From NCBI GenBank assembly GCA_964188305.1, contig OZ076888.1: a DNA stretch of 64,000 nt. One strand, given 5' to 3'. Within the stretch, counting starts at the first letter, position 1, and each line of letters begins with the position of its first letter. This DNA is from Podarcis bocagei (lineage: Eukaryota). The translations under genes were made by a program, and so were the position numbers. The notes beneath the pieces are model-generated. The model was not told where the DNA came from and ran no database searches. It saw nothing but the letters and a program-made list of their open reading frames with translations. This document shows, piece after piece, positions 18,717 through 64,000 of the stretch.

Positions 18717-19748
18717 ATGAGTGGCCCACAAGAAGAGATAGTCACAAGAGCCAAGATCAAGCAACAACAACAACAACAACAGTTGCAGCTGCAACAGGCA
18801 AAGAAAAGAGGCTCAATCTCAGGCGCAACAGCCGGATCAGCAGGAACAACAGGTCAAGACAAAGGAGCAGCCGTTTCTATGGAAGCTGTGACAGAGGCCC
18901 TGCTCAAGATAAACCAAACCCTGGAGTCTTTGACAAAACAGACTTCAGAGAACACACAAAAATTAACAGAAATATCGGCAAGATTAAACCAGAATACAGA
19001 ATCTATAAATAAATTGGTAGAGGAGAACGCCACCACGCGCCAAATTGCCGAGGAGGCCAAAGCCACTGCCGGAGAGACACAGGAGAAGCTAGAGCCGCTT
19101 GCCAAGAAGGTCTATGAGCATGATGCAACTTTGGCCTTGTGGGAGTTACAGAGGAAAGAGAGAAATTTAAAATTAAGACTGATTCCGGAGAATGAAAGAG
19201 ACAGCCTTGTGGAATACTTGACACGGGAGTTTGCGGATTGCTGGGACCTTGAGGAAGACGAATTTAAAATTACGACTGCCTTCAGATTGGGTAAAAAGCA
19301 AGATAGAAAGACACCGAGAGACTGTCTGATTACACTCAGATCCAAGGAGGAAAGAGACAAAATATTAGGATTACACTTTGAAAAGGCCCTGCAAATTGGA
19401 AATTCAGCTGTACAGATCTTCAAAGACATCCCAAAATACATTTTGGATTTAAGAAACTTTTACAAGGACTTGGTTCTCTTGCTAAAGAAGAACACTATTC
19501 GCTTTAGGTGGGAGTTTCCACAAGGACTGTCATTTGACTACAAGGCAAAGAAAGTGAAAATAAAGACAATTCAAGATAAAGACAAATTTTTGGCAAGATA
19601 CCAGGAGGATTTACAGAAGGGGACTGTGGACGTACTTGCAGAACAGAGGAGAGCACTGGACATCCTGAATCTCTCGTTTGGACAAAAACCACCACCATCA
19701 GAAGAAGAGCAACAACTTGGAGCTGTTGGAGGAGCCTTAAGAAAATAA
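18717..19748 (+). CDS. L1 ORF1p (coiled coil + RRM-like region + C-terminal domain), 343 aa
   Basis: Heptad-rich N-terminal half, then NLKLRLIPE, AFRLGK, PRDCLITL, IFKDIP, FRWEFP, typical of vertebrate L1 ORF1. Confidence 0.9.
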   Translation: MSGPQEEIVTRAKIKQQQQQQQLQLQQAKKRGSISGATAGSAGTTGQDKGAAVSMEAVTEALLKINQTLESLTKQTSENTQKLTEISARLNQNTESINKLVEENATTRQIAEEAKATAGETQEKLEPLAKKVYEHDATLALWELQRKERNLKLRLIPENERDSLVEYLTREFADCWDLEEDEFKITTAFRLGKKQDRKTPRDCLITLRSKEERDKILGLHFEKALQIGNSAVQIFKDIPKYILDLRNFYKDLVLLLKKNTIRFRWEFPQGLSFDYKAKKVKIKTIQDKDKFLARYQEDLQKGTVDVLAEQRRALDILNLSFGQKPPPSEEEQQLGAVGGALRK

Positions 19749-19752
19749 CAAG

Positions 19753-28600: not shown

Positions 28601-29026
28601 TTTCTCAAGGTTATCATTCTTAGGATAATACATCATTAAGATTATAGTGCACATACATACACACCTGTACACATACCACTGTAGAACTATGTGTAATGTA
28701 AGGATTTAGGCTTAAGGACTTCTTTGCTCCTGAAACCCAAATGGGTCATCACTGGAATGTTTCTGCTTTGTTCAGAGTATGAACATACATCACTGCAACT
28801 GCCACACTGCCACATTACAATCTACCCTAGGGTTCACCTGAATTCAGGAAGGTTATATCATACACATAGGGCCTGCCATGACTTGACAGCCAATAAGAAA
28901 GCAGCATATAAAAGGGATTATACTATTACAAAGTGTAAATTCCTCCTCAGGAGCACCGGATCCCTGGTTCTTCTACTTCTTCCTGTTTTTTTTACTCCAT
29001 ACCAGGGTAGCATGAGGAAGCTTCTC

Positions 29027-29123
29027 TCAAAGCCCTTTATTGAAGTAGACAACCTCAATGTCAGAGTTTTTCTCCCTGATCAGAGCTTGGACTTCAGGTT
29101 CCAGGCGGCTCACCCGCATTGAG
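29027..29123 (-). CDS. SFXN3: SFXN3 last coding exon ([31 protein letters not shown])
   Basis: ttttccag|; TGA at 29029-29027; canonical NKGL C-terminus. Confidence 0.94.
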
Positions 29124-37941: not shown

Positions 37942-40319
37942 CTTCTGCAAGGACACAAAGGAGGGAGAGCAAACTCAACTCATGTCACAGTGAGGCTAAG
38001 CAGAAGGGTTGGGTCCACATTGCCAGTGGTAGGTGGGGCCGGAGGCAAAAGCAGTCAGAGCAATGGATGTGACTCTTTATCTTTATACAGCAGGCTAAAT
38101 TCCATCCATGCCAAAGTCAGAGGCTTCTTACCCATACAAATGTCTCTCTCCATTCTCCATTCAGGGAAGCAAGTGGCTGCAAATGGGAGGAAGGGACAGG
38201 AAGAATTCCTCCCATGAACTTGATTAAGTTATCTTATCTTAGGGCCCAAGCTTATGTGCTGAAAGTTTGTTTTTCAAAGACCATTAGAACTCGCACACAA
38301 TGCTCTCCAACAAAGCAGGAACAGGCAAAACTGGGGAAGTTATCAGATATGTACAAGGTCACTTTCGTACCACCTGAAAGCACGACTTTCGCTTTTACTC
38401 GCATACAAGGATGATGTGATCTTCTCACATCTCCACCATTCCCCAAGTTGCTGATATGCTGGTGCTTTGCTCCTGAGTTCCTCCTTACATACATAGGGGA
38501 TCCTGCCTGTTAAGCGCAAGAGGGTTTTTTGCATCCCATTAGAGAGATTCCTAGCCCTTGAGCCTTCTACGCAGCAGACAGAATATGTGCCTAAGCAAAA
38601 TTGAGCCAGTACAATAAAAACAGGTAAATCAATATACATGTTAAGTTGCTTATTTTCTAGCACTTGAAGCTGAGCTTATAGAGGTTACATCAACACTAAG
38701 GCTCACATCAAGATTCACGTCTGGAAATGTTGGTTGCCCTTTAAATCCCATTTGTCATGCCCCTACTGTTACCCAGGCAATGATTAAAATAACAAACATC
38801 ATACTCCTTGCGTCAAAGAAAAATGTCAGCCTCCAATATTCACAAATTCTCTCTGGAAGGAATAATCCTTTTGGATGGAAACCCTGTGAGGCACAACAGC
38901 AATATTCAAAAATAAAAAATAAAAAGCCGATAAAGACTTTATCTGCAGTATTATTAGAACAAATACTCTGAAGCTTTCCTGCAGAGACTGCATACAAAGA
39001 ACATGCAGAGATACAGATTGAACCTAATAAAATTTCAGGGATTTGAATTCTATTCTCATTAGTGGGTGAAAATGGCATGAACAAGGAAATTAGTCAATTT
39101 CATCTGGAGACCAGCAAGGTATCAAGAGGTCACCTCCCCTTTCCTTTTTAACCTGAAAAGCTTCTCAAGCATTTTTTATTTCTGTACTTGCTGCTGGTCT
39201 ACCAAGAGGCCAAAGAGCTGCAGAAGGCAGTTCTATGTTAAAATGCAGCAAATTACTTTAATTTCCAAGAAGCAAACCACACCACTGGGTTCTCCCTCAG
39301 ACCTTCTGTCAATTTAGCTTGTACTAACAGTGGATGATCAACACAATTCCTGGGTTAGGAGGAATAGTCAAGTCTGAAATCCTCGACTTGAGTAGTTACT
39401 TAAGTCTGTATCCACATTAATACTATGAGTGTGTCTATACTTGGTGTGTCTATAACCTACCAAGCATTCAGTTTGGCACTATAGCACACAGCCAAGAGTA
39501 CACGAAGTATATGCCAGCACTTTTTCCCTAGAACCCAGGATATGGCCTGAAGACACATGAGGCCACTGCCTTGCGGCAGCTAAACAGGAACAGATCTTGT
39601 CAGTGCCTGGATGTTTGACCACCAGGAACCACATGTAGACCACATGGAAGCAAGGTGGGCTATATACAGCATGGGCCAGTGAAGCGGCATGGGGAAGCTT
39701 TGTGTGGCACATGACAGCAGAGTCAATCTGATGCTCCTGCAGCCATGCGCCAAGTCGTTTCCTGAAGAGTGCTCACCAGCCACTACTGACTATAGATGTA
39801 AGAAAATTAATAAATAAAAGAAATAGGACATGGCTAGGTTAAAAATGGGAGGAGATGACACAACCAGCAATGGTCCTACAATGGTCTGCTGAAATCACAG
39901 CATGCTTTATGGATCAGTTTGTCCTGGCATGGGTATAGTAGGCGACAAGCCAGCCATGCAAAAAGTAAGGATTTCTACACACACATCGCTCCATCCATGC
40001 AGAACTTGGCCAGTCATCTGTCAGGAATTCTTTAGTTAAGATTCCTGCACTGCGGAGGGTTGGACTAGATGCCCCTTGGGGTCCCTTCCAACTCTACAAT
40101 TCTATGGTCCTAAGTGATGACCCATTTGCTTATATGAAGTTGTGATGTTTCAAACTAGATAGAAGCCTCTGAAGTAAAGCTGGTGTTTTAAAAATAAAAT
40201 ATATTATCTGGCCAGAAAAAAAGCCCTGTAAGAGAAGAGGTGCATGTCTGAGCAAATGGGAGACCCCAAAATAAAGAAAACAGGGAAGTCTTCAGTCTCT
40301 CTCTCTGCAGTCCTCTTGG

Positions 40320-40530: not shown

Positions 40531-40999
40531 GCGAGAAAATGAAACAAAAAGTGGGCCATCCAACAGGAGGCATGTGAAGAAGCTCACGGATGAAAGAAGC
40601 CCCACAGACCTTCCTGGGTGCTGAGATTGGCAGGCGGAGGGGGGCGCTCTCTTGGTACTTCCTCCACCCTCAGAGTCTGGGGTGCTGGTGCCCCAAGAGA
40701 GGCCATTCTCCATGGCAGCCCCTAAGTTGTGGAGCCCCCTTCCCACAAAGATGCATCCAGTACCTTCATCATACAGCTGCCACAGGATGTTGACAGGATG
40801 CCACAGGATGCTTGCCTCTGACTTTGACACCTGGAGCATCTAATTTCAGGGCTCACCTTATTTTCCCGGTTGTTAGTTGTTCTCAATTGTGCTTTAATGT
40901 TGTTACCCACCCTGGGACCTTGAGGCCAAGGGAGGGGGGGAGAGAGAGAGAGAGAGAAAGACTCCCGTCTTTCAAGGCTATCCCGCCACAGAACCCGGG

Positions 41000-42100
41000 G
41001 AGTTAGTTGAAGGTGGATTGGAGAGGGCTGCTCTGCGTATCCCGCTATGTGCCGCTACCTGTCGCTCGCATCCTCTGCCTGCCGCCCTCCCAGCCAACTC
41101 CCCAGATCCCGGCGTGATGCTCAGCAGCCCCCTGGGCACGCGGTGCGCGCAGGGAGTCACCCGCCAGCGCGTGCATGAGCTCGTGACGCGGATGGGCCCC
41201 CACCCAAAACCCCGGAGTGACTCATAAAAACGGATGGAGGAGGAGGAGGAAGGGAAAGCGCGCGCGGAGTGGGCGGCATGGGGTGGGGAGGAGAGAGAGA
41301 GAGAGAGATGGGAACGAGTGATGAGTAATCCGCAGGCTGTGGAGGGAGAAAGGGAGAGGCTGCATAGCGAGGGAGAAGGCGAGGGAGATCCTGGCGCCGG
41401 GAGCCCCGAGGCAGAGCGCAGGATGGAGCCGGGAGGCGTCCCCGCCCCGCGAGGGGAGGGCCGGGCTGGGTCGCGATTCCTGCGAGAGGAAACTCACTTG
41501 TTCCTCCGAGCGGCGGCAGTGGCGGTGGCGGCTGCAACGCTGTCGCCCGGCGGCTGTGACACGGCGGCGCTGGGCTGCTTCCCGAGGCCGGCCCCTTCCT
41601 TGGCTTGTCACGGCGCCCGAGCGTCGCGGGCCCCCCGGCGAGGCGAGAGCCAATGAGCGGCGAGGGAGAGCCGGCCAAGAGGCAGGGCTACGGCCTAGCC
41701 AGTTCCTCGGAGCCTGCTGGGAAGCGGAACGGAGCGGGCGGGAGGCTGGCCGGGGTGGGGCTGCCTGGAAGGGGCGGATGGGAGAGGCTTGTCCCTGGCA
41801 GCCCTCGCGGGGATCGGATTAGGAGGAGGCGGCAGCGCCAGCTGCTCTGGCTGCCGGCCTTTTCCCTGCCTTGCTCCTCGCCCGGCAGGCAAAGTGGGCG
41901 CCTCCCCTTCAGAGCGCGCTACGTGCCGCTTGACACAGGCTTTGGCGGTCAGATCCTGCCCCGCTCACTGGCAATCGGCCGGAGCTGTCCACGTTTTAAG
42001 CATGAAACCTGTAGCAGGACCCAGGTGCAGCCTGGGGCCTGCTTCTCCAGTAGCCCGTCTCCGGCCCTGGAATGGGCGAGATGCTAGGGGAAAGTGCCCT
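41000..42100. promoter_or_regulatory. CpG island / promoter of SFXN3 (possibly bidirectional)
   Basis: High GC and CpG density in an otherwise CpG-poor window; CCAAT at ~41650 and GC box GGGGCGG at ~41771. Confidence 0.85.
41498..41620 (-). other. SFXN3: SFXN3 non-coding first exon (5' boundary approximate)
   Basis: Strong donor aa|GTGAGT at 41497-41492 inside the CpG island; the next acceptor precedes the ATG exon at 37944. Confidence 0.65.
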
Positions 42101-44987: not shown

Positions 44988-45261
44988 GGATAAACTGTTG
45001 AAAAGCACTGCCAGTTCAAAAATTTAGTCATTTGGACTCATACACTGGGCAGGCTGAAGGGAATGCATGCACTATTACAGCCCTTGTACTGAGCTGTGTG
45101 CATGTCTCTGTGTTATAAGATAGTTATATAGCATGGCGCATAGGATGTGTGTTCCTGACCTTTCTCTCTCGAGTCTATTTCTGTCTACAGTTATGTTCCC
45201 TGTAATGCTGAGCTATACCTTGCTGCACTGCAGATACCCAGCAAAAAGACCCTGCTTAGCC

Positions 45262-45511
45262 ATGGCATCTACTATGCTCTCCAGTTCCCTGCTTTCCCTC
45301 CTCTATTTGGTGCTTCTGACATTTGTGGGCAGTGCGGTGCTCCTTGCTGAGATGCACCAGCACAGCTCACAGAGCCGCAACGTCCATGCTTTCCTGGAGG
45401 CCCTCATGATCTCTTCCTGCATCTGGATGCTCTGGTTTGGCTGCCACTCTTCCCGCAACAAGCAGCTGAAAAGGCACCAGGATCACCAGGCAGGAGCAAG
45501 CTGGCTAAAAG
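45262..45511 (+). CDS. Otopetrin-like exon 1 (MASTMLSSSLLSLLY...DHQAGASWLKG); start codon uncertain
   Basis: gccATGg Kozak context at 45262, with in-frame ATGs also at 45193 and 45205; donor G|GTAGA, phase 1. Confidence 0.8.
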
Positions 45512-48500
45512 GTAGAGATGTTAACACAGATAGGATCCATTGCAAAAATGCCCGTGCCCAAGCAAATTGTGCAATCCTTCAAACAACGAAGACCATCACT
45601 AGCAATGAAACCTCCTTGCCCTTCCAAAGTTTTGGCATTTCTACTAAAAGGGGACTCAGGCAAGTGCACTAGAGGAGCTGTGATACACAAGACATCATTA
45701 CAGTGGAATCCTGCAGAGAAAATGTGGTTCTTGGATCTGCTGGTGTCTGACAGATCCAAGCCAACCAGAAGATATTTCAGAATTTCAGTCCACTCTGCTA
45801 TTAGCCTGACTTGCACTTCATTTCATTTCAGAGAGACAGAGAGCCTATTGTTATATCCAGTGCTTTTTTTCTGGGCAACTCAGGGGTACGCATACCCCTA
45901 AACATTTCATGAATCTCTGACTTTGTCCATTTACTGTATTTATTTTCTCCGATTTGAACTACAAAATGGTGGTTTTCATGAGTCAAAATGAGAGTACCCC
46001 TAAACACTTTTTTAGAAAAAAGCACTGGTTATATCAGCCAATTTGTTCTCACAAACCACCACTCGCATCAGCGGCCTACCCCTATTAGCATTGCAGTGAT
46101 TGGCAAGGGTGGGGACTTCCATGAAACCACAGATTTCTCAGTCTTGTTTCACAATTCCCCTTCCCATGCAGCTCATGTTGTTGTTTTTTAATCAGTAGTC
46201 TTATGGGTCAGTGGAGAAAGGCACTGGGGACTCACTTTGGAATTGACAGGGTGGAACTGTCAGGATGCATATGCTTTCCTTCATCAGCAGGAAGCCTGTT
46301 CCCCTTGCTCTCTCTGGTCCCACGGTCTTGGCACTTAATATGAATGGACCTCCTGCCCCCTTCTGCTTCCTGAATAAATTATCAGAGTGCCTGCTTTCTG
46401 TGCCGCATTTGTGGTGACCGTGCTGTCTTGTCATGGCAGGCGGTCTCTCTCTCTTTGCACTGGCCACCTTGGTTCTGGACTGCCTCTCCTTGGGGTACAG
46501 CTATGAGCTGCAACACTGCGCCTCCATGCTCATCACCACCTTCCCTGTCGTGCAGGCTGTTTTTACCATCATCCAGGTGAGGTCAAATGTGGTCAGATAT
46601 TTGGTGGGGATGCCACACCACAGGCAAGCTCAGCCTTAGAGGAGTTAGCTATTCTCCTTCCTTTTCTGCCACACATCTAGGATCCCAGCCCCATCGGCTT
46701 CTCTCCACTGTGTTTTTTCTCCTTGCAAAACCTTCACTACTGTTAAAGAGGCAGTGCATAAGGCAAAATTTCAGAGTACTGGAGGAACAGTTTGTGCCAG
46801 GCTTCCCGAACCTAGTGGGCTTTCAGCAACCATAGTCAAGCTAAAGGTAAAGGAACCCCTGACCATTAGGTCCAGTTATGACCAACTCTGGGGTTGTGGC
46901 GCTCATCTCGCTTTATTGGCCGAGGGAGCCGGCAAACAGCTTCCGAGTCATGTAGCCAGCATGACTAAGCCGCTTCTGGCGAACCAGAGCAGCACACGGA
47001 AATGCCGTTTACCTTCTCGCCAGAGCGGTACCTATTTATCTACTTGCACTTTGACGTGCTTCCGAACTGCTAGGTGGGCAGGAGCAGGGACTGACCAATG
47101 GGAGCTCACCCAGTCACGGGGATTCGAACCACCGACCTTCTGATCAGCAAGTCCTAGGCTCTGTGCTTTAACCCACATGGACTACAACTTCCATCCTCCC
47201 TGGCCATTGACCTTCCTGGTTGGGGCTAATGGGAGTTGGGAGTCCAATAAACGCAGAGAGCACCAGGTTGGGGAAGACTGGTTTATACTATTAGTGGCAA
47301 ATGGTGGTGTGATCTTCTGTCTCTTTCCCCTCCCTGGCACCTTCTTTCCCTTCTTTTCAGGTCTCAGTGCTGTTGTTTAATGCTAAAGTTTGCATCCAGG
47401 AACACCAGCATCTAAACAGGTAGGTGTATTCTCTTGAGCTATGTAAAATCAGCAACCCAAACAGCTACCAGGCATACACACTGGTCCAAGGTTTGAACTT
47501 CAAAGGAGTACAGTCTTTTCTAACCTATGGGATTCTTTATTATTTCATCCATCTTTCTTCAAAGGTGGGATAAAAATGCAATAAATGAAAGCATCCAATC
47601 ATCACAAAGACTGCTGTTTGTACTGCAGAACTTTCCTCCTCTTCACCCCCACACTGTGCCCTTTCCCTAAATGTGCTCCAGAGGGGTGAAGGAAAGTCCA
47701 GAACATATTTAAGGGGTGTGCAGGCAGGGAAGGAAAGTCCTGTTGCACAAACAGTAATCATTGCACTGCTAGGGCACGCACTTAGCACTGCACTGGATGC
47801 AATTAGAATCACAGAGAATCAGAGACATAGAGTTGGAAGGAACCACGAGGGTCATCTAGTCTAACCCCCTGCAATGCCCTGCAATGCCCGCAGCTGTCCC
47901 TGAGAGGGCTTGAACCGCCCGCCTTCCAATTAACAAGCAGATGTGCTGATCCATTGCACCACAGGAGGGTTTGCATTGGGTAGCTGTAATATGAAAATTC
48001 TACCTCTGGCAAGGATGAGGACGCCTGGAAGAATCTGAATGTTGCAGATGAGGCAACCGTGCAGGGAAAAGCGAGTCAGGTTTTTGGCAGCCTTGTAAGA
48101 ATGCCAGTGCATGAAATGGCTACAAAGATGCTAATCATGGCTGGGAGGAATGTTTGGATTGGGGCCAGGGAGCCTCTATCTACCTTTGAACCAAATTGAG
48201 TAGGGAAGGGTGAGGTGCAGAGATCTTTAATTTATCCCCTTCCTCCTTTCTCCCTGTGACTTCTAGGTTTGGGCTGATGCACACTCTGGCCACCAATGTG
48301 CTCCTGTGGATGAGTGTGGTGCTGGATGAGTCCATGAAGCAGCTGGAAGAATTTTATGATGCTCACAAGGGAGAGACTTCACAGGCCCCCCCATGGTACA
48401 AACCGTCCTTCTCATCTGGGGAGGGAGCTCTCAAAGAGAGGTCTACAAATGGCTTGGCTTGATCAGTGACAAACTTAGGAACTAAGTCTTTCAAAGTGAC

Positions 48501-48834
48501 CAAAGGCATGGTTCCAATCCAAGGGTAGGGCTGCCATATTTCAAACAGGGAAAATCCGGACAGCAAAGTTGTAAAGCTGCTGACATAGGCTGCCATACAT
48601 CTGGATTTTCCCGGACATTTGGCCTATTTCCACCCAGACTCTGCTGAGGAATGTGGTATTCTGGATATGTCCAGGAAATTCTGGACGTATGGCAACCCTG
48701 TCCAAGGGACTTCTGTTTACTTGCTATCTTACTGTACTTATATGGTAGCCCAGTAATGTATGTTCTCTGAGCATTCACATCCGTTCTCTGGCCTTTTGGT
48801 ATAAAGTTGTCATGATTGGATGAAGAAAGCAGAA

Positions 48835-48891
<57 letters not shown>

Positions 48892-51800
48892 TTTATTTAT
48901 ACCCTGCCCTCCCCGGTCAGGACCGGGCTCAGGGCAGCTACCATCAAAGTATGTTACATTAAAAACATAAATCAAACAATCAATTAAAATACAGCTTAAA
49001 ATCAAATTTGGAGCAGAATAAAATCAGATGGCAACCCACAGATTATAATTTTAGGGGATGGGAACATTGAGTGCTCACCAGGCCCAACTGTTTGTGCTGG
49101 TCTTATATGAGCCGGTGGAAAAGAGCTGTGTGAGGTTTCTCAACTACACACAGGGCACAGCCACACCAAAAAGTGCTCTTAATACCATTTTAACAGTCAG
49201 GCTTCCCCCAAAGAATCCTGGGAACTGTAGTACTGACCTCACCAAGCTACAATTCCCAGCACCCTTAACAAACTACAGTTCCTAGGATTCTCCATGAGTG
49301 TTAAAGTGGTGTAAGAATGCTTTAAATATTTGCTGTGGGTGTGACCAAAGTGGACAGAATTGTCCTCTTCTCCAGTTCAAAGTTGCTGTTGTTCCTCTGC
49401 TAAACATATATCCATTTTCTAGCACAAGCGTCCTATTCTTCCTACAGGTGGTTCCCACACCAACAGCTGCATCTGTACCACCAGCCTTTGCCACATCTTT
49501 TCAGAAGGGGCCGCCTACCTGCATCCCTTCAACATTGAGTTCAGTCTCTTCTCTTCTACAATGCTGTACATCATCTGGAAGAACACAGGGCGGCAAAGCC
49601 CCAGCCAAAAGCCCCAGCTCACTCACAAGGCACACTTCCATCTCAGTGGGGCTTTTGTGGGGCTAGTGCTGGGGGCCTTGGCCATTTCAGCAACATTTGG
49701 GGTGATGATCTCCTTTGGAGTGCTTGCCAAGTCTCCCCACACCATTCCTGAAGCCCTACGGACATACTACATCTTCAACTCTGTGCTCTTGTCAGCCATG
49801 TTCCTGGCAACATTGATTGGCATTGCCACCTATAGAATGAAGAAAAAATCTGCGGCTCTCCCTTCTGACAAGAGCGTAGTAAGAAACTTAGATGTCACCT
49901 TGCTTCTGGGCAGCTCCTGTGGTCCCCTCATGGTATCCATCTTCTCTTTGGTTGCCATCTTATTTCTTCATACCAATGGTGGCCTCCACCTCCTAGACTT
50001 CTGCTTCTCTCTCTGCAAGACCATCCAGATATTGGGACAGAATCTCTTCATTACTGAAGCTTTGTACTCAAGCCTCCCTCAAGAGCCAGATGGCCAAGAC
50101 AACAGCAATTCTGCTGCTGCCAGCTGGATCTTTTCCATTTCCAGAGGTCCTGCAGAACAGGATGGCAATAGAGCTTACTCCAAAACCCATACACTGACCA
50201 ACATCATGGCCAGTTTGGAAAATCAACTGCCCATGCACTTGTCAGATCATGGTGATGACCCATCCCTCTTCCAGATTTCACACATTCAGAGAGAACCTAA
50301 AAAACAAAGTATCAGAAGGAAGGTCCTACAAAACATCTCAATTCTCCTCATCTTCTACAACATATCGGTAAGTTGGGTTTGGTTTAAGACAGATCTAAAG
50401 GTGGCACCAAAATTGTAGTGGGTGGGGGATTTTGTGGAAAGGGCTTCTAGGGAGACCCTATGCAACCAGGAACCAGGCTGCCCATGGCATAATTGAGGCA
50501 GTAGTCTCTGTTGGCTTAGTTTTGATAATATGATCAATCTATGTCAGCATGCCAAGTAAGTCTTAGCCCAGGCCTAGTGAAGACTTGTGGTTTTGTTCAC
50601 TAGGCCCAGGCCAAGCTATATACCAGAAAGTGCAACAGATACCAGTCACGAAATGGCTATCTTGAGGTTGTGGTGCAACACAACATGGCTGCCATGGGGA
50701 ACGTGGCATGACACAAAATGGCTGCCACATCTAAAACAGCAGAAAGAGGGACACAACTGCAAAATGGTAAGGACATGTCCATAACTACCAGCCACTTCAA
50801 GAATGGGAAACAGGTTCTTACAGGATTGGACACTGTCCTACACCCAGGTGTGGCTGGCAAAGTTGCTTTTTATCAGGCAACATTGTGCTCACTTACCAAG
50901 AGCAGTTGACTTCTGAACAGAGAACTGCAAGGAGCATTTTTCTATGAGGTAGCTGATGTAGTTGCCTTTTTATCATCTATCCCAGGGCTCCCCCAGAGAG
51001 AAGCTCTTTGGACCTCTCCTGTGTTCAGAATAGATGAGAGGATGGGTGTCCAATTCAAGACCTTTTGTGGGCATCACAGTAGGTACTGACGGGAATACTG
51101 GTGCCCACAAGCACCATATTGGTGAACCCTGTTATACACCAACATAGAATGATACCATTTCCTAAAATGTTAAAAAAATAATTATTAATGATTAAAACTA
51201 TCAGCAGCACATCAGTTACAGTACATAAAGAAATTACAAACATGTCATAAATATTTAATGACAAGGTATAAAAAGATATTAAAAGTTAATTCACCCTTAA
51301 TTCAATATTGTAGTCTTTAAACAAGAAGCAGCACTAGAAACCTACTTTACACCATGAAATTCCAAGATAAATACTGCAGAGCAAAAGAAAGTGAGTACCT
51401 CTTATAGCAGCCTGTTTCACTTTCGAAAATGTTCCAAACAATATCCAGTCTTCTTTGAACTTATTTGCCTTAGCTCTTCTAGGCTGATATGAAGACTTTT
51501 TACTCATCATTGCCAAATTTCAGTTTGCTCTACCAAATTCCTTATTGAAGAACGCCCCCCCCCCATATGTTACATGCACTAATCTTGCCATAATGTTCCT
51601 GATTTTGTTAGAGCTCCAAGCATGCCAAATCTGAAATGGAAAACACAGGAGATTGTCTAATAATATTTGTAGTAACTACCGTAACTTTGCAAAATCAGTT
51701 CTTGAATGTGTTCCAAGTGAGAGAATCTATGTGACCCGTAGAGGGCAGTAGTGGATTAGAACCAAGATCAACAAAAAGTCTTATGGCACCTTCAAGATGT

Positions 51801-53331
51801 GGACCAGACACCATTTCATCAGAGGCGTCTAATGAAGTGGGCTCTTCTTCATAAAGGTTCTGCCATAATAAAACTTGTTTGTCTTTAAGGTGCCACAATA
51901 CTATTTGATGGTTGGAGTAGCAGGAAGCTAACATAGGTACTTATAAAATGGTTATTTGGCTTGTAACGTTAGTCACCTAATAACCTGCATTTGGTACTTT
52001 GCAACACCAAGTCAAGCTTTGCTATCACAAATCCTTTTCTCCTGATTCCAAAAATGTACATATTTGTTAGTTTCTCCTTTAAGCAAATCCCTCACCCCTT
52101 TTTTGTTGCAAACAGTATCAAGGAAACAGCACAACAGCGACATAAATGAGGATTCCTATGCAGCCTATAGCTCAATGTAGGTACACTGGTACCTCTGGAT
52201 GTGAATAGGATCCGTTCCGGAGCCCCGTTCACATCCAGAAGTGAACGCAACCCGCATATCTAAAAACATAACACATCATCATTGTCTAAAATGTCATGCT
52301 TACAGAAATTTTCAAAGACCTGAGTTACGTAACTGAAGAATTCTGGCACTGCATGGAAAGCATATCTTCTTGCCAAAGAAAGCTGGCTGAAGTGGAACAA
52401 CATCCCCATCTATAGAATGGCCGATCTAAATGTTCAGGAGGCACACAAATGCTACAACTTTCCTGGGACTGTACCAATTTGGAATCCAGGCAGTGGAACT
52501 GAACTTTATCCCTGTCTTCAAAATTTAATTCCACTCCCCTCCTGCCACCACAAAAAAATCTGGTGTTTTAGAAAGAAAGGCTCTAACCAAGCTTTACTCC
52601 TGACCTGCTGCTTGTTTATGTTCACGCAAAGGGAAGGGGAGATATAGCTGTGTGACGCACCTCTCACATTCTGACCTACAACAGTGATGGAGCACTGCCC
52701 CATGTTCTTTCCCTGAACATGTAGATTGGCTCAAAGAGCACCTTCTAATCTGGAACATGAAAACTTCTGATTGTTGTTCATGTGCTTGAGAAAGCAGAAC
52801 AGGGGACAGTGGAAAAACAGGTGTATATCCTAGACAACGTAGCTTTTCCGTGTGCTCTATAGGCACGTCAAATGCTAAATAAGTATGGGAGACATTTCAG
52901 GAAGGATGGGGAAGTGGTGGCCCGCCAGATGCTGGATGGGGCTGATGGGAGTTGTAGTTCAACAATAACAACAGAATATGGAGGGCCACACGCTCCCCAT
53001 CCCTGCCTTGAAAGGATGCGGCTGCCCCACAATAATGGCTACTGGTGCCAACAGTTTGAAGTTGGTTTTATTCCTTTCCCTGTTTCCTTTGTTTGACTAG
53101 GTGTGGATTCTATATGCCTATGGGACCCGCCCGCACCTGGTGAGCCAGATTGAGCAGTCTTTCTATGGCTTCACACTCTGGGCCATCGTGGTCAAGATCT
53201 CCCTGCCACTGGGCATCTTTTACCGCATGCACTCCGTGGCTAGCCTCTTTGAAGTTTACTGCAAGACCTGCAAAACACCACCAGCCTTAGGACCACCAAT
53301 GCACCCTGACATCATGAAGAGAGCAGCATAA
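45262..53331 (+). CDS. Otopetrin-family proton channel gene, OTOP1-like exon structure, 6 coding exons, ~570 aa (exon 4/5 junction out of phase as given)
   Basis: Otopetrin motifs: D-H-x-AGAxWL(K)G, FPVVQAVFTIIQ, RFGLMHTLATN, CxCTTxLC, PFNIEFSLFSSTMLYIIWKN, RNLDVTLL, QNLFITE, RRKVLQNI..NIS, LGIFYRMHSVASLFEVYCK. Many hydrophobic segments. Intron positions match those I recall for OTOP1. Confidence 0.9.
46440..46576 (+). CDS. Otopetrin-like exon 2 (GLSLFALATLVLDCL...AVFTIIQ)
   Basis: ggcag| ... |gtgagg; 137 nt, phase 1 to 0. Confidence 0.9.
46842..47177 (-). mobile_element. Sauria SINE (Squam1-type) in otopetrin-like intron 2
   Basis: tRNA-like head (ggttcgaatcccc on the minus strand), characteristic body gtagataaataggtaccgct and an (acctt)n-type tail. 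Confidence 0.8.
47361..47419 (+). CDS. Otopetrin-like exon 3 (VSVLLFNAKVCIQEHQHLNR)
   Basis: Long pyrimidine tract ending ttttcag| ... |gtagg; 59 nt, phase 0 to 2. Confidence 0.9.
48267..48395 (+). CDS. Otopetrin-like exon 4 (FGLMHTLATNVLLWMSVVLDESMKQL...SQAP)
   Basis: ttctag| ... tg|gtaca. Ends in phase 2, while the strongest exon-5 acceptor needs phase 1. Confidence 0.8.
48835..48890. repeat. (AAT)n microsatellite (probable tail of an L2-related insertion)
   Basis: Perfect trinucleotide run next to tttataccctgccc, as at the L2 3' end near 2465. Confidence 0.9.
49448..50367 (+). CDS. Otopetrin-like exon 5 (GSHTNSCICTTSLC...HPFNIEF...QNLFITE...FYNIS)
   Basis: ttcttcctacag| ... tcg|gtaag; 920 nt open frame with several hydrophobic segments. 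Confidence 0.92.
53101..53331 (+). CDS. Otopetrin-like last exon (VWILYAYGTRP...FYRMHSVASLFEVYCKTCKT...KRAA*)
   Basis: tttgactag|, phase 0; contains the conserved FYR box; TAA at 53329-53331. Confidence 0.92.
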   Translation: MWILYAYGTRPHLVSQIEQSFYGFTLWAIVVKISLPLGIFYRMHSVASLFEVYCKTCKTPPALGPPMHPDIMKRAA

Positions 53332-56569: not shown

Positions 56570-56614
<45 letters not shown>

Positions 56615-56670
56615 TACTACTACTACTACAACTACTACTACTACCACCACTACTACTATTATTATTATTA
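56570..56670. repeat. Compound (TTA)n/(CTA)n microsatellite
   Basis: Direct reading; source of the poly-I/T/N/V ORFs in the ORF track. Confidence 0.95.
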
Positions 56671-57028
56671 CAGTATACCTGTCTGGAAGGCAAAGAAGGA
56701 GCATGAATCTGAACCCATGAGAGGCAAGATGTTTTCACTGGATCCTGCATTTTAAACATAGGTGAATTTTCCTAAGGACAATCCTCAGTGGTAACATCAC
56801 CATCGACAACAACAAAATGAGTCTACGAGAGGTAATACTATGATTGATGGGAACATGTCCAGCAACGGTTTCCGCTGGTGGGAAGCAACCTAAGGGGCCA
56901 AAATGTAACAAACTCACCCAACTTTCCTGAAGGAATCAGGCCCAAGCGCAGTGTGCTTCTCCAACCCACCAAGGGACACCATCCAACAGTGAGAGTCCTT
57001 CTGTGCGTAACCAGCACCCTGTCCTGCC

Positions 57029-57221
57029 ATGGCATACACTCCTGATTCATTCCAGAGCGAAATCATTTACCCGACTCACTCCCGGGGCTCCAGCAGTGAC
57101 ATCAGCACTGCCAATCGCCTCCTTCTGAGCAGGCAGAACCGGCTCCTGAATGGGAACCTTCGGGACTACCGCACCTCGTCCCCCATGGGAAGAGTTATCC
57201 TCATCAACACACCCCTTGAAG
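57029..57221 (+). CDS. PDZD7: PDZD7 first coding exon
   Basis: gccATGg; donor G|GTACC, phase 1; probable acceptor ttttcctaag| at 56776. Confidence 0.9.
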
Positions 57222-60200
57222 GTACCGTTGGGGGTGAAGGTGGGAGGTGGTAGTGTGCAAAGGACGTCATTTCTACTTACATAGCCAAGCCAGATCCTGG
57301 CTGGATGGAGAGAGTTGGTGTCATCCTTTTGCAAAAGAGTAGAGCCATAGCCAAATGGTGCTGTTTGTTCCTTTCCTTGCAAGATCAGTTGCAGATTTAT
57401 GAGGAAGTTGCTGTGACCCAGGAGAGCCAATTAGCACGCACACCTCATTGCCCTGCAATTTTATATACATTCCAGTATTAGTAAATAAGCTAATTATGTG
57501 ATTAGGAAGTATCACAGTAATTAGAAACATGCATTTGTAATATGCATAATTCCAGGAAGTAAATGTTACCTCATGTTATGTAGGATGGGTTGTTTTCGGC
57601 AATTATTTGGTGCAAAGAAATGAGGTGTTAGAGGCAGAGGTAAGGGGACATGGAGCAGTGGCAGACCTTGGGGTCTCAAAATTCAGCACCCCATACCTCT
57701 TGCCTTCCATACTACAGTTGCAGTGGCCCCTATGGCACGCCAAGTGCAACTGAACCAGTCGGGCTCCCCTAAATTAGCCTCTACATTGAGGGAGAGAGAT
57801 AAAATTGATTCAGGCAGCTTCCCAGAATGCTGAGCCTCAGCAAAATGGGACTTTCTACTATGCTGCCACTTTCTGATTGAGGACCAAAGAAGACACAGCA
57901 TGGGAAGCCCATGAGCAGAACTGTGGATCCTTTTTTAAACAGGGTGTATTTTAAACAGGCTCAAGCAGAAAGGGTGAGATACAGCTGGGTATACCTGTTC
58001 CAGGCCTCAGAGGGCTAAGCCAGCCAAACAGGGAGTGCCACCAGGCCTGCCAGACTTACACTGTTCAGGGTCTATAACTTTATTCTAAAAAGACTCCTCC
58101 ATCAGGCCTCAGACAAGCTCTGCATGGGCCTGATTTTAATTGTGAATAGCAACCATAGGGATCATAGGGTGAGGAAGAGCTAATTTGGATCAGGGCCATG
58201 ATGGAGATAGAGCTTAAGACTTTCTCTCGGGCTGCCCCCACCCCTATTCTTCTATTTGCCCCACGTGGCAAAACATATAGGTGTCATATAGAACATTTTA
58301 CAGGCTCCTTGATATATAGAGGTCAAAATCTAGAGATTTAGAGGAGAAAAGGCTCCTGCCACCCCAACCCCCTCCAATAGACTGATCTGCCTCCTCATTT
58401 GACCTTGCCCTGTACTGAGCCACTCCCATGGCTCCTATTAACATGTTGCAGTCGTTTTATTATGGTCAATAACCAGTGTCAAGATAAAAACACCAATTAC
58501 AAAATTGAAAAGCTGAGAGCAAAATAAAATAGTATAAAACCACATCCACATAAAAAAGCAGTTCTAGTTGGGAACTCTTCTGGTGCTGGCCATGTTCCCA
58601 GGGTGTGAAGGCATTTACAGTATTGCTGCCTGATAGGAGAGGAGGAGCGGGAGATGCTCGTTGCAATTCTATGTTTGCATTCTGTGTATTGTAACCATTT
58701 ATATTATACAATAGGAAATCCATGTGTGCATTGACAGAGAAGATACACTTTGACAAACGCTCCCATGTCTCCCTAGGAAGTAAACTGTCGGGGATTTCAT
58801 GGCTTGCCCTCCAGCCTGCCTAGATGTCATTTCTGGGTCTGGTGGACCCACAATGGTGGGGAAGAGAGGCTAAAATGCAGAGTGTAGGGAGGTATGGCAT
58901 ATTTCTCTTGCAATTCTTTCTACTATCACTTTCCCAGTGTTAGGGTAGAGGATCACGGGTAGCTCCTTTTGCTGGTCATTCCAGCGCAGTGAGTGTCCTT
59001 AGTGGTGCCATTTCATAATTATATTATGCTGTATCCCCATGACAGCTAACAGTGATGAGAGTGATGCCATCAATGCCATTACGGTGGAAAAAAGCACAGA
59101 TGGGAAGCTGGGCTTCAGTGTGCGCGGAGGCTCGGAGCATGGCCTGGGTATCTTCGTCAGCAAGGTGGAGGAGGGCAGCAGTGCAGGTAAGCAAAATCTC
59201 TCCAACCCTCCCAGCCTTAAAAACAGACAACAAGCTGCTCGGATGTTCTGTCCATAAAACCAGGATTCTAGTGCCTGCAACACTGGCAGAATCACTTAGA
59301 CTTAAATCTTTGCCAGCAAGTGGTCTTCCCGTGCTGACCAGTTCTTCTTCAGGACCTAATCCATGTCTGGAGGTTGCAGCAAAACCCAAGCAAAGTAATT
59401 TAGTTGAGACAATGTTTATGTGTCATGTTGCTAAGTAGTTCTGGAAGCACATCAGTATAGAATTCCATGACATTGCAAAATGTGAGATTCTCTGAAAGCC
59501 ATGCATACAGGTCTTTAGAGCTCCAGTGAAGAATAAGTCTTTTAAACAGAGAGAGAAAATATGCTATCAAGGCTATTATTATTATTTATTACATTTTTAG
59601 CCCACCTTTTCCCCAAGGAACTCAATGTGGTGTACATGGTCCTCTCCCTCCTCGGAGGGGAAAGCGCCAAAGAAGGAAATTATAAAGAAAAAGGCTGTTG
59701 TTGTTATATAAATAAACTGGGAATATAAAGGAAGGGGATAAGAGAGAAAAGATTTTACAGGAGGAAGAAGCAAATGTCTAAGGACAAAGGAGGAGAGATG
59801 AAAGAAACTTGTAGTTGTGAGAGAGGGGCAGAAATTAGGTAGAAGTTGAATGTGAAAGGAGAGTGGGAGAAGAAATTACAGAAGATGGGTAAAAATACTT
59901 TTAGGGTCATGTGGGAGTGGGGAGGGGAAAATATTTTTTTAAGTGTTTTCCACTTGGAGCCCCTGAATCAGCAAATCCTGCCTGAAATGAGGAGGCCCTC
60001 ACAATATCTCCATGGCAAATTATGTACTTAGCATGAGGAAAACTGACCTGTTGAACTCCTTGCCACAAGAACAACGCTGTGGCAGAGTTTAACCATTTCC
60101 AAAGATAGATTGGATATCAGTGGGAAACGATGTCAGTAAATGCCAGCTGTTTGTTCCAAACTCTGCTTCCTGAACCACCATTTTGTGACTGAGGTAGGTC

Positions 60201-63200
60201 TCAGTAGTTTTCAGCTGTTTCAACTGGGAGTAGAAAGTTTGAGAAACCTTGCCTTACTCTAAAATGTGTGTGCTACATACTTTTATATTTTGTCATTTTA
60301 GTAATACTGTAAAAAAAAAAAATTAAAACAAAAGAAAACCAGGAAACAGAAACCCTCTCTAATCCTTAGCCCAAGTTGAGTTACCTGTATTTAATACCAA
60401 CAGAACAGGCTGGGCTGTGTGTTGGAGATAAAATCACAGAGGTGAATAGTGTGAGCTTGGAGAACATTACAATGGGAAGCGCAGTCAAAGTCCTGACGGG
60501 GAACAACCGGCTGCGGATGGTCGTGAGACGCATGGGCAAAGTGCCAGGGATAAAGTTCTCCAAAGAAAAGACCACATGGTAAGCGGAACTGCCTGCTATG
60601 GTGACACCCTATTGTCAGCAGGCCCTTGGGTAACCAAAAATCACAATGTGTTGTTTGTAAGGGCCGAGGCAGGTGTGCTGGGCTCAGCGGAGCAGAGAAG
60701 GTGCGATCGGGTTTCGTGAGAAGCAAGGAGATGCTATCGGGATGAACTCTGACCAGGGCGCAGGAGAGGGATGGGTCAAGGTGACCTGGGGTTACTGGGC
60801 TAAATGCTCCCCTCTGACTTAGGGCACTTCCAGACTACTGCTGTTTCAAGGTGGGGTTCAATCACATACAGTTGCACTGCTTGGGTTGTGTTTACACCAT
60901 ACCTTTTAAAGCACGTTCAAAGCACGCCACCACCTTCACCAAAGAATCCTGGGAACTGTAGTCTACCCCTCACAGAGCTAGCATTCCCAGCACCCTTAGC
61001 AAACTACAGCTCTCAGAATTCTTGCAGGGAGGGCAAGGTGCTCTAATTGCGTTTTAAAGGTGTGTTGTGCAGCCAGCTGTAGTTGACTAGGATGTCATGC
61101 AACGATCCCTCAAAACAGGGTTGCCATATTTCAAAAAGTATAATTCATGACACCCACAAACTTTTTTTTTAGGAAGACCCCAAAGTTGTAGAGCTTTTGT
61201 GGAAACCACCAAACTACTTTTGGGGGGGAAACCTACCCCTAAAATAGTGGTTTTAAGCTTTTGGAGCTGTTTCCGCTGCTTTTTCCATCGCATTGTCATA
61301 CATCTGGGTTTTGCCTGACATTTTGCCAATTTGGCAAAATCCCTCTCTCCCCCATGCCATTTTTACACCTGAAAACCAGGACGTGTCAGGAATTTTCCTG
61401 ACATATGGCAAGCCTACCTCAAAAGATCAGAGTTTTTGTATTAAGGAAAGTTAACAGGGAAATGCACTGGAAAACGTGGGCTAACTCCTGCTTTTAGGTA
61501 ACATTGCCAAAGCTCCCTGCAGACAAATTGGGATGAATAAACAGGCCATTAAAACACATGAGGAAATGAGGCTGGACACGGGCTTTGTGCATAATATGTA
61601 GATAGGAAATGAATAGTGATGAGCAGAGGGCTGGGAAATCATCTGCTAATGTGAAAGAGGAAAAGAGAAGAGGATCAAGGGGACATGCATGGGACTCTGT
61701 TACAGTGGTGTAGTGTGGGTTGTCAGCACCCGGGGCAAGGCAAGTAATTTGCGCCCCCTAACCCATGGATTTGCGCCCCCTAACCCGTGGATTTGCGCCC
61801 CCTAACCCTAACCCCCAGAAGTTGCGCCCGGTGCGGCCGGCCCCCCCTGCACTACGCTACGCCACTGCTCTGTTAGCAGCAGGGCTGGATTAAAGCCTTT
61901 AGAGCCCCTAAGCACTGAAAAGATTTTGGTGCCCCCATATGCAATTCAAAATCAAACAATGCTAAACTGTGAAACAACATGTTATTTCTGGAAATGACAC
62001 AAGACATGTTGAAATTAAAATAGCTTCTTTCTAAGTTTTCTGACTGCAAAACTCTGGATAAATTCATCAAAACTGACTTGATGAAGCACATTCGCTTCCA
62101 TAAGCAGTAGGGAAAGGGAATCAATACCTATTTTTCTCTCTCTGAGGGCTTTTTATTCATTTCAGCTGAGGAAAAGCATTATTCACAGCATTCATAACCC
62201 GATCTCTTCAGTTGGAAGTACATATTGTATTCAGTCTTTCATTTCTGTGAAAGATCCACGACTGAATTTCATGTTTTCTGTTTCATTAAACTTCGTGACA
62301 TATAACAGTAGAACTGCTGTAGTTGCCCACAAAAGGTTCACATTTAAGTCCTGAGGGTATGAGTCCACTAGCTTTTGGGAATCTTGTAAATATCATACAT
62401 CAGATAAGTCTGTATTATTTAGAAAATTTAATCCACTTGATACTTCTTCACATACATTTCACTTCACTTCATATTAGCTTCAGGTGTATCAGTTATATCA
62501 CAGTAAGTAGATACATGAAATTTGTCTCTAAGATTCAGGTGCTGTTTCTGATGCACTGGTGCATTTGCTTGTTTTTTTCCTGATTTGCTTGCAGGAAGTA
62601 GCTGGGCTACTTTGTAGTTAATTTCAGGCAATATGCCCTCAGATCTTTTGAAATCATTCCTCAAAGTGTGCAACTGGTCTGCTAATGATTGACAGGTCTG
62701 CACAGGTTTTCAAATCCTTCTTAGTGGTAGCCCCTGTGATTTTGGAAATGTTTTCCTAGGGAGGTTTGGCTGGTGCCAAGCTTATGTGCAAGCTTTGGCA
62801 CATTCTTCTAATCTAGTTTATAGTGGGGGGGGGGCTTTCTGACTGCTTTTGTTTTAGGTTATACTTGTTGGTGATTATCATATTATTGCACCACAAACTA
62901 GGCCCAAAATAGAAGACCCATGCTCCTTCACACTCCCTCCTTTATAGTCGCTTTTAACCATTTGTCCTTGTTTCTATCTTTTTAAGTTATGTATGATATA
63001 CCTTTTAACTACTAGCTTTTATTCCTTACCTGTTTTAAGTCTTATGTGTTCAGTTTATCCATATGTTTTATCTTATGCTGGTCTGTGGGCCCCATTGCAA
63101 TTCTAAGAGAACGAGGGAGGTATTCATGTTGCGTTCTGGCACCTATTTTTCTAGAAAAATAGCACTGGGTATAAGTTTCCTAAAATACAATACATCATCC

Positions 63201-64000
63201 CCAGATCCAGCATAGAGAGGTTCTCTTCTGAAACCAGAAATGCCCAGGCTCAAGCCTGCTTGTCAGTCAGAAACACACTTATGGAAAAGATATGGGTGGG
63301 ACATGGTTGCATAAAGCAGAGGAGGGGAGTGGACATGCTCAAAGCCTCTGTTAAAAGCATGTTCTGGAGACATGTTTTGGTGTGTTGGGTGTCAGCCCTA
63401 ATAAGCCCTGATTCAAATAAAGCTTTGTTCCAGAGGTGGCCATATGCTAGTATGGCTGGAGCCACCCCACATTGCTTTCATTCTCCTTCTGTCTCACACA
63501 TGGACACATTCATTCTCTCTCTCTCTCTCCCCCCCTTACTCAGCCCCACCCCCCCACATGGCAATTATCCCTAAGAGGGAAAAGCTCCCATTTGCATCCA
63601 TGGAAGCTTTCCTCTAAGCCTAATTGCCACATGGGGAGAGCTATTTTCCTCAGGGTGGTAGCTGGGGTAGGTGGAAGACGAGCGAACCCTCCTTGTGTAC
63701 AAAAAATAAATAAATCATTCTGTTCCTTGGGTCTATTCCTAAGTCTCAGTTACGGTTGTTCAACATCCAGATTGCAATTCTGGTTACGTTTTGCCCACCA
63801 CCTATGGGCTTATTGATTTTCCAAGTTCCATTCAAAAATATTTCAGGGTGAATTCTTTATCTCGCCACAGGGTTGATGTGGTGAACAAGCGCCTGATTGT
63901 GGAGAGGAGTGGCTCAACTCCATCAGACACGAGCTCTGAGATTGGGAGGCGGAGGATCATTCACCTGTATACCACCTCTGATGACTACTGCTTGGGTTTC
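57029..64000 (+). CDS. PDZD7: PDZ domain-containing protein 7, 5' part (4 coding exons; continues past the window end)
   Basis: [22 protein letters not shown]..., [73 protein letters not shown] match PDZD7 PDZ1 and the start of PDZ2. Confidence 0.95.
59046..59186 (+). CDS. PDZD7: PDZD7 coding exon 2 (PDZ1 N-terminal half)
   Basis: gacag| ... G|gtaag; 141 nt. Confidence 0.95.
60404..60578 (+). CDS. PDZD7: PDZD7 coding exon 3 (PDZ1 C-terminal half)
   Basis: aacag| ... TG|gtaag; 175 nt. Confidence 0.95.
61703..61867. mobile_element. hAT-type MITE with internal tandem repeats containing CCCTAA
   Basis: 8-bp TSD CTCTGTTA (61695-61702 and 61868-61875); TIRs cagtggtgtagtgt / acgctacgccactg. Confidence 0.85.
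63871..64000 (+). CDS. PDZD7: PDZD7 coding exon 4 (partial, cut by the window end)
   Basis: ccacag|; encodes [44 protein letters not shown]. Confidence 0.94.

Follow-up and report, generated by a model that had tools for sequence, protein, structure and literature searches.

Recent papers on otopetrins (2022-2026) credit vertebrates with three OTOP channels, of which OTOP1 is the proton channel of sour taste and otoconia. The single comparative-genomic study, which confined itself to the OTOP1 and USH1G-OTOP2-OTOP3 loci, found OTOP1 flanked by TMEM128 and DRD5 and counted eight otopetrin genes in Xenopus tropicalis, none of them at an SFXN-linked locus (PMC3038909). Mechanistically, proton relay in mouse OTOP2 involves Glu250, Asp369 and His551, plus Pro246 and Arg517 (PMC11343839), and Zn2+ potentiation of mouse OTOP3 requires a linker residue, H531 (PMC10101688). 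The window analysed here, a stretch of 64,000 nucleotides from Podarcis bocagei, very probably adds to this picture the lacertid copy of an ancient fourth otopetrin (hereafter O4), predicted to be a two-barrel proton channel, which has stayed between SFXN3 and PDZD7 from the jawed-vertebrate ancestor onwards and whose frame is broken here by an extra C more likely to be artefactual, very recent or heterozygous than the relic of an old pseudogene. Among the papers searched, none that names or describes the O4 clade was found, which agrees with the sequence-only reading, where the paralogue had been taken as uncharacterised.

Pfam and tblastn of orthologues delimit a six-exon otopetrin gene at 45262-53331 on the plus strand, all six exons being located by tblastn and every intron having a GT donor and an AG acceptor. 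The Pfam otopetrin family (PF03189, gathering cut-off 27.8 bits) matches four of the exon ORFs. Three of them pass this threshold individually, at 35.6, 61.8 and 36.9 bits, and exon 2 reaches 19.3 bits. The features of the window are the following.

29003-37947, minus strand: sideroflexin gene, taken as SFXN3 (tblastx HSPs against sterlet SFXN, exons approximate; Pfam SFXNs at 1e-25, 5e-14 and 1e-15)
37777-37947, minus strand: first coding exon of the sideroflexin gene (tblastx against the sterlet SFXN gene)
40750-42000, no strand: CpG island in the interval that separates the otopetrin gene from the SFXN coding start (GC 0.58-0.71, CpG o/e 0.57-0.91)
45262-45511, plus strand: otopetrin exon 1 (GCCATGG context at the ATG, phase 1 end; the orthologue P0030 begins at the equivalent ATG)
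46440-46576, plus strand: otopetrin exon 2 (GGLSLFALATLVLD...TIIQ; PF03189 positions 5-53; AG/GT sites)
47361-47419, plus strand: otopetrin exon 3, 59 nt (VSVLLFNAKVCIQEHQHLN; tblastn with Naja and Xenopus orthologues; AG/GT sites)
48267-48395, plus strand: otopetrin exon 4 (RFGLMHTLATNVLLWMSVVLDES...; PF03189 positions 70-112; splice sites)
48386-48392, plus strand: C7 homopolymer, one C more than in Podarcis raffonei (C6), which throws the exon 4/5 junction out of frame
49448-50367, plus strand: otopetrin exon 5, 920 nt (Pfam 7.7e-17; 83% identity to squamate orthologues)
53101-53331, plus strand: otopetrin exon 6, with the stop at 53329-53331 (Pfam, tblastn, splice sites)
57026-64000, plus strand: first coding exons of PDZD7, the gene running off the window (tblastx against sterlet and Callorhinchus; PDB 2EEH; Pfam PDZ)
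About 57026-57223, 59042-59197, 60376-60588 and 63869-64000, plus strand: these first PDZD7 exons (tblastx against sterlet and Callorhinchus)

Exon 5 encodes a CxC...C motif, the PFNIEF motif with the central Glu, TM6-TM10 and a long cytoplasmic loop, and exon 6 encodes TM11-12 with the GTRPH and FYRMH motifs, followed by a 19-aa C-terminal tail that is missing from the Varanus, turtle and snake models. Another in-frame ATG lies upstream of the exon 1 start, at 45133, and the Podarcis gene call for O4 runs exactly from ATG to stop, without UTR. The CpG island is probably the SFXN3 promoter, and there is none at the otopetrin ATG. A search for transcripts of any O4 gene found none, the Logan fragments being genomic since their sequence continues into introns in every case.

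The sideroflexin gene is assigned by sequence at the family level only (Pfam), and we take it to be SFXN3 specifically because of its adjacency to PDZD7, an established gene order. Upstream, where retroelements predominate, no KAZALD1-like ORF stood out. As for the other flank, the PDZ exon finds its best match among solved structures in human PDZD7 (2EEH, E=3.8e-17), with whirlin scoring 3.7e-8. The position between SFXN3 and PDZD7 that had been read from the letters is thus upheld, with the sideroflexin identified at family level. The same order, SFXN(-)/OTOP(+)/three-PDZ protein(+), is common to Podarcis, Callorhinchus (elephant shark) and sterlet, and X. laevis also shows SFXN(-)/OTOP(+), the flank covered there ending short of the next gene downstream. 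Within the window, no second otopetrin or USH1G-like gene accompanies O4.

In our maximum-likelihood tree, with one outgroup nearest to arthropod otopetrins (Atlas) and another that is ambiguous, O4 is monophyletic (support 100/99) and includes sequences from chimaera, bichir, sturgeon, lungfish, amphibians, turtles and squamates. Branching inside the clade resembles the species tree, that is, chimaera, bichir with sturgeon, lungfish, amphibians, turtle and squamates. OTOP1, OTOP2 and OTOP3 form a clade without O4 (100/98), as do OTOP2 and OTOP3 by themselves (100/99), and the cyclostome otopetrins (lamprey P0065 and hagfish P0127) group, weakly, with OTOP1/2/3 (85/70). AU tests reject joining O4 to OTOP1 (p=0.0022, the constraint costing 29.4 lnL units) or to OTOP2 (p=1.5e-52). 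Since the OTOP1/2/3 clade excludes O4 and these joins are rejected, the window gene is, judging from its sequence, a member of a fourth vertebrate otopetrin subfamily, neither the sister of OTOP1 nor truly OTOP2-like. The sequence-only reading was therefore right that this is no simple orthologue of OTOP1, OTOP2 or OTOP3, while the "OTOP2-like segment" that it had pointed out has no phylogenetic meaning. Its suggestion that the gene was kept in reptiles and is missing in mammals also agrees with what we see, with members in squamates and turtles and no O4 from mammals, birds, crocodilians or teleosts among 105 annotated-protein matches, in which their OTOP1/2/3 were found by the same search. 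When bird or crocodilian O4 was sought in fragment clusters, the identifiable ones were frogs.

Databases label O4 proteins "OTOP1-like" or "OTOP2-like", names that would suit a gene duplicated recently within squamates, or a copy of OTOP1, OTOP2 or OTOP3 moved to a new site. This origin, which has virtually no chance of being correct, is ruled out by (i) orthologues, which from chimaera to turtles show 43-84% identity when true OTOP1/2/3 reach only 28-37%, (ii) SFXN/PDZ neighbours that are the same in elephant shark and sterlet and (iii) coexistence within species, of O4 with OTOP1 in Pantherophis, with OTOP2 in Callorhinchus and with both OTOP1 and OTOP3 in Protopterus. A subtler proposal, also made in the sequence-only reading, is that genome duplication made O4 and OTOP1, and these two alone, direct sisters (ohnologues). 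Its appeal comes from gene neighbourhoods: SFXN1 lies beside DRD1, OTOP1 adjoins DRD5 and the lamprey otopetrin neighbours a D1-class dopamine receptor, adjacencies that make an ancestral SFXN-OTOP-D1R block conceivable. However, the tree joins OTOP1 to OTOP2 and OTOP3 with O4 outside, and forcing O4 onto OTOP1 carries the likelihood cost given above, so that a pairing with OTOP1 alone is very improbable. What survives is the more general idea of an ancient paralogue born from an SFXN-DRD-OTOP paralogon, which is plausible as a deeper (first-round-type) split; a literature search on such a paralogon returned nothing relevant.

The remaining puzzle is the state of the gene in this assembly. The spliced CDS measures 1726 nt (1 mod 3) and its translation ends after 221 codons, because the C7 run, shortly before the exon-4 donor, puts it out of frame. 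Bridging the break with an X yields a product of 574 aa, which is also the length of six in-frame protein models from five lacertid species. When all GT or GC donors in 48340-48520 were paired with all AG acceptors in 49300-49466, no GT-AG pair was in frame and stop-free, and only nine GC-donor combinations, of poor consensus, were. The full protein cannot come from this assembly by canonical splicing. Of the six spliceable exons and ~570-aa protein originally described, the exons with their GT-AG sites stand, but the assembled frame does not deliver the protein. Should the extra C be real, O4 would be truly inactivated in this species or individual, the locus being either a null allele or a pseudogene of very recent origin, a reading for which the assembly itself speaks, as does the apparent dispensability of a family not found in mammals, birds and teleosts. 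It is nevertheless rather unlikely. The C7 run is the sole lesion, with start, stop and all splice sites intact, and the protein is, frame break aside, ~99% identical to lacertid orthologues, with 4-10 amino-acid differences from the six in-frame models. Compared with P. raffonei, dN/dS is 0.096 and identity is 98.4% in exons, against about 94% in non-coding DNA. Moreover, single-base length errors in homopolymers are common in assemblies. We thus favour an assembly error, or else a very recent or heterozygous lesion, over an old pseudogene.

To look at the encoded protein, we used P0030, a 99%-identical orthologue standing in for the window's own protein. Its sequence matches mouse OTOP2 (8ug6, 2e-87), zebrafish OTOP1 (6nf4, 2e-77) and chicken OTOP3 (6nf6, 5e-67), and its AlphaFold2 model consists of twelve long helices (mean pLDDT 74). 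In a Foldseek search, this model showed target-normalised TM scores of 0.82-0.88 to these three structures (0.87-0.88 for OTOP2 and OTOP1), and no other fold below E=0.05. By alignment, Glu250, Asp369, His551, Pro246 and Arg517 of mouse OTOP2 correspond to E222, D340, H542, P218 and R508 of O4, which are invariant in 29/29 O4 sequences, and the relay residues are present in exons 5 and 6 of the window. We therefore predict that O4 is an otopetrin of twelve helices and two barrels and that, like OTOP1-3, it would form a dimeric proton channel in which H+ would pass through a relay from Glu (TM6) to His (TM12) where the two barrels meet; its proton conduction, its gating and the tissue in which it acts we infer by analogy. 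At four otherwise conserved sites, O4 differs from all sampled OTOP1-3 (Y to F beside the central Glu, Y to F at 281, R to S at 399 and F to Y at 505). In addition, the position of Tyr245, which hydrogen-bonds the central Glu in mouse OTOP2, is mostly His in O4, Tyr in OTOP1 and OTOP2, and Tyr or Phe in OTOP3. Owing to these O4-specific substitutions, near the central Glu and elsewhere, gating or conduction could differ from that of OTOP1-3.

Taken further, these findings lead to a scenario to which we give slightly better than even chances. O4 would be a working proton channel, gated in its own way and serving a sensory or pH-regulating role of its own. It would descend from the first vertebrate otopetrin split as an ohnologue of the ancestor of OTOP1/2/3, and stem from an ancestral SFXN-OTOP-D1-receptor block. 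Chimaeras, non-teleost ray-finned fish, lungfish, amphibians, turtles and squamates would have retained it, and mammals, archosaurs and teleosts would have lost it independently of one another. If this is true, the textbook view of three vertebrate OTOPs is a mammal-centred undercount. Whatever its exact role, O4, slowly evolving and with intact relay residues, is a natural comparison for understanding gating differences among OTOPs, the obvious points being (i) the Phe beside the central Glu, (ii) the His at the Tyr245 position and (iii) the Arg at the Zn2+ linker site. Xenopus, axolotl, Anolis and sturgeon all have O4, which makes it directly testable. Recognising O4 corrects misleading database labels and gives the SFXN3-PDZD7 interval a dated marker of its history.

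How does O4 compare with otopetrins that have already been described? Mouse OTOP2 (PDB 8ug6-8ug8) is the top solved-structure match by both sequence and fold (TMt 0.87), with a common 12-TM double-barrel fold and conservation of the five residues listed above, but identity is only about 29-35%, the locus is different (USH1G-OTOP2-OTOP3 instead of SFXN3-PDZD7) and PFNIEY in OTOP2 is PFNIEF in O4. OTOP1 belongs to the same family, has the same fold (TMt 0.87-0.88) and carries a comparable FYRMH...EVY motif at its C-terminus, as well as an Arg in the TM11-12 linker (R554 in mouse OTOP1, R517 in mouse OTOP2, R508 in O4), but has mammalian members, when none was found for O4. OTOP3 (chicken 6nf6, Xenopus 6o84) again belongs to the same family and has the same fold, but its linker position is His or Gln rather than Arg, and it is the tandem partner and tree sister of OTOP2, not of O4. 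The cyclostome otopetrins, which are vertebrate proteins outside the three named gnathostome groups, show 33-36% identity to O4, and the lamprey gene has a D1-class receptor as its neighbour, as OTOP1 does, in contrast to the SFXN/PDZD7 neighbours of O4. What O4 adds is one more paralogue in a channel family that is already known; it does not amount to a new kind of system.

The otopetrin gene at 45262-53331 (+) belongs to O4, the SFXN3-PDZD7-linked otopetrin clade, which is an unrecognised subfamily of a known channel family. Matches to its product in the protein collection fall in two clear tiers. The upper tier, O4 (43-84% identity, E 0 to 1e-118, proteins full-length or nearly so), comprises turtles, many squamates, frogs, salamanders, caecilians, sturgeons, paddlefish, bichirs and Callorhinchus, together with a partial lungfish model, and its database names are inconsistent ('OTOP2-like', 'OTOP1-like', 'Otopetrin 3'). 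Next below comes the lamprey otopetrin (33-36%), while bona fide OTOP1, OTOP2 and OTOP3 from mammals, reptiles, sharks and teleosts are just 28-37% identical. Mammals, birds, crocodilians and teleosts are absent from the upper tier, even though the same search did retrieve their OTOP1/2/3. Of the proposal that the gene was kept in reptiles and lost in mammals, retention in reptiles is upheld, and for mammals the protein-collection matches include no member.

In a maximum-likelihood tree of 49 rows (LG+C20+F+G4 PMSF), whose root is set by eight representatives of non-vertebrate type taken from an exhaustive HMMER search (one outgroup set being nearest arthropod otopetrins), O4 forms its own clade (100/99), ordered as chimaera, then bichir plus sturgeon, lungfish, amphibians, turtle and squamates. 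The tree also recovers OTOP1 (100/100), OTOP3 (100/99) and OTOP2 (99/92) as groups, with shark or chimaera members inside OTOP2 and OTOP3, and a quick tree of 79 rows agrees. The sequence-only reading, which had seen no simple orthologue but a possible ancient paralogue, was thus right on this point and wrong in proposing it as the sister of OTOP1: O4 falls outside an OTOP1+(OTOP2+OTOP3) clade (100/98), which lamprey and hagfish join weakly (85/70), and AU tests reject its grouping with OTOP1 (delta lnL 29.4, p=0.0022) or OTOP2 (delta lnL 114.5, p=1.5e-52). A classical OTOP gene translocated to this locus is excluded as well, because single species carry both O4 and a classical paralogue, namely Pantherophis (OTOP1), Callorhinchus (OTOP2), Protopterus (OTOP1 and OTOP3) and Leptodactylus (an OTOP2-like gene).

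Otopetrin-coding pieces lie on the + strand from 45.2 to 53.4 kb (ORF listing and Pfam), four ORFs matching PF03189 over profile positions 5-53, 70-112, 190-366 and 392-433. Six exons were placed by tblastn with orthologues from the protein collection, the 59-nt one being revealed only by Naja and frog queries. The junction-read model agrees with the exon count and coordinates proposed earlier, and all acceptors are AG and all donors GT.

Exons of the otopetrin gene (junction reading)
45262-45511 (+), E1
46440-46576 (+), E2
47361-47419 (+), E3
48267-48395 (+), E4
49448-50367 (+), E5
53101-53331 (+), E6

An in-frame upstream ATG (45133-45261, +) lengthens exon 1 by 43 codons; the Podarcis muralis model P0263 (617 aa) begins at the equivalent codon, and other squamate O4 models at the equivalent of 45262. 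At the other end (53272-53331, +), lacertid O4 proteins have a 19-aa tail (KTPPALGPP...) after ...EVYCKTC, where Varanus, turtle and Naja models end and the Xenopus model is only four residues longer. Long AAT/ATT-type microsatellites occur at 48820-48900 (intron 4) and 56570-56680, and similar tracts in the sterlet and Callorhinchus loci give spurious tblastx hits.

The gene, read earlier as six spliceable exons encoding a protein of ~570 aa, is real, with the caveat that its frame is broken as assembled: the spliced CDS (1726 nt) reaches a stop after 221 codons, owing to a seven-C run (48386-48392) a little upstream of the exon-4 donor. The orthologous spot in Podarcis raffonei has six C, in frame (...SQAPHGGSHTNSC...). 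Among all donor/acceptor pairs enumerated, no canonical GT-AG pair rescues the frame, which is restored by weak GC donors only. Six in-frame 574-aa models exist in the same cluster from five lacertids (P. raffonei, P. lilfordi, P. muralis, Zootoca vivipara and Lacerta agilis), each merely 4-10 residues different from the window protein, which makes the source of the window a further lacertid. Identity with P. raffonei is 98.4% in exons and about 94% in surrounding DNA (dS 0.055, dN 0.0053, dN/dS 0.096). Because there is only this one homopolymer lesion and purifying selection is strong, an established pseudogene is less likely than an error in the assembly, or else a mutation that is heterozygous or arose very recently.

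Flanking features in the window, and the neighbour of the lamprey otopetrin
about 29003-37947 (-), sideroflexin exons, matched by Pfam SFXNs and by the sideroflexin gene of sterlet
about 40750-42000, CpG island in the interval that separates the SFXN coding start from the otopetrin gene
from about 57026 (+), first exons of a three-PDZ protein; best solved structure for the PDZ1 exon is human PDZD7
lamprey locus L005, 30086-31543, intronless D1-class dopamine receptor (485 aa; E about 1e-179 to human DRD1/DRD5 chains)

The flanks proposed earlier, SFXN3 and PDZD7, hold for the sideroflexin family and for PDZD7 (PDZ1 exon to 2EEH, 3.8e-17; to whirlin, 3.7e-8); the sideroflexin we take to be SFXN3 from its adjacency to PDZD7 in the established gene order, the two being head-to-head neighbours in mammals. 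The PDZD7 coding start is about 15 kb from the CpG island, the otopetrin filling the gap. No CpG island lies at the otopetrin start itself, which would fit a tissue-restricted promoter; no evidence of O4 expression was found, short Logan contigs being genomic and the Podarcis gene call lacking UTRs. Elsewhere, 18666-23481 (+) holds an apparently intact LINE, with a 360-aa ORF1-like frame and, after it, an ORF2 of 1247 aa that carries endonuclease (PF03372) and reverse-transcriptase (PF00078) domains and no internal stop. Three adjacent frames of 166, 277 and 225 aa at 10839-12768 (+) look like pieces of the reverse transcriptase of a second non-LTR retrotransposon.

The order SFXN(-), otopetrin(+), three-PDZ protein(+) is seen in Podarcis raffonei, elephant shark and sterlet, and therefore predates the split between cartilaginous and bony vertebrates; Xenopus laevis has SFXN(-)/otopetrin(+), the downstream gene being outside the 10-kb flank. 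The lamprey otopetrin (P0065) lies 7 kb upstream of its dopamine receptor, a pair that resembles the OTOP1-DRD5 pairing reported in gnathostomes (PMC3038909) and agrees with the tree, where the cyclostome genes join OTOP1/2/3. The earlier paralogon idea stays alive through this pair, in a changed form in which O4 appears to stem from the earliest split; its OTOP1-sister version fails. Nothing relevant was found in the literature on SFXN/DRD/OTOP paralogon history.

Papers of 2022 to 2026 count three vertebrate OTOPs, the name 'otop4' appears in no paper of any year, and O4 is described nowhere in the literature found on otopetrin phylogeny, on otopetrin paralogues and gene loss, on a fourth subfamily or on otopetrins of basal vertebrate taxa, in line with its having been called uncharacterised; an earlier mention is possible, since coverage missed most subscription journals. 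A 2011 comparative study dealt with the OTOP1 and USH1G-OTOP2-OTOP3 loci only, and placed the eight Otop genes that it counted in X. tropicalis at two loci (PMC3038909); the X. laevis SFXN-linked otopetrin (P0010, L003) lies at a third locus, outside that survey. O4 gene models are already public under '-like' names. O4 gives a small family of channels a useful new member that can be tested, although it is common for mammals to have lost such additional paralogues.

In a model based on mOTOP2 and C. elegans OTOP8 structures, TM6 Glu250, under Pro246, receives the outside proton and passes it to TM12 His551 at the interface of two barrels, with Asp369 nearby and Arg517 salt-bridging the outward-facing Glu (PMC11343839). 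By HMMER alignment, Pro246, Glu250, Asp369, Arg517 and His551 correspond to lacertid P218, E222, D340, R508 and H542, all encoded in exons 5 and 6 and invariant in 29/29 aligned O4 sequences. An AlphaFold2 model of P0030, a 99%-identical lacertid orthologue, has twelve long helices (mean pLDDT 74; confidence drops only in loops, including the cytoplasmic one at 402-474). Its target-normalised TM-scores to mOTOP2, zebrafish OTOP1 and chicken OTOP3 are 0.82-0.88, no fold other than otopetrins being matched. Because the relay residues are invariant and the fold matches OTOPs, O4 is predicted to be a dimeric, proton-selective channel, in which a Glu (TM6) to His (TM12) relay would run between the barrels.

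Compared with all sampled OTOP1-3, O4 differs at four otherwise conserved sites: (i) Tyr to Phe immediately after the central Glu (PFNIEF), (ii) Tyr to Phe at 281, (iii) Arg to Ser at 399 and (iv) Phe to Tyr at 505. Moreover, the position of mOTOP2 Tyr245, a hydrogen-bond partner of the exposed Glu, is His in most O4, Tyr in OTOP1/OTOP2 and Tyr or Phe in OTOP3. As leads, these residues suggest distinct gating. Zn2+ potentiation is governed by one position in the TM11-12 linker (mOTOP3 H531 = mOTOP2 R517 = mOTOP1 R554; PMC10101688), where O4 has Arg, like OTOP1 and OTOP2 and unlike OTOP3, which has His or Gln.
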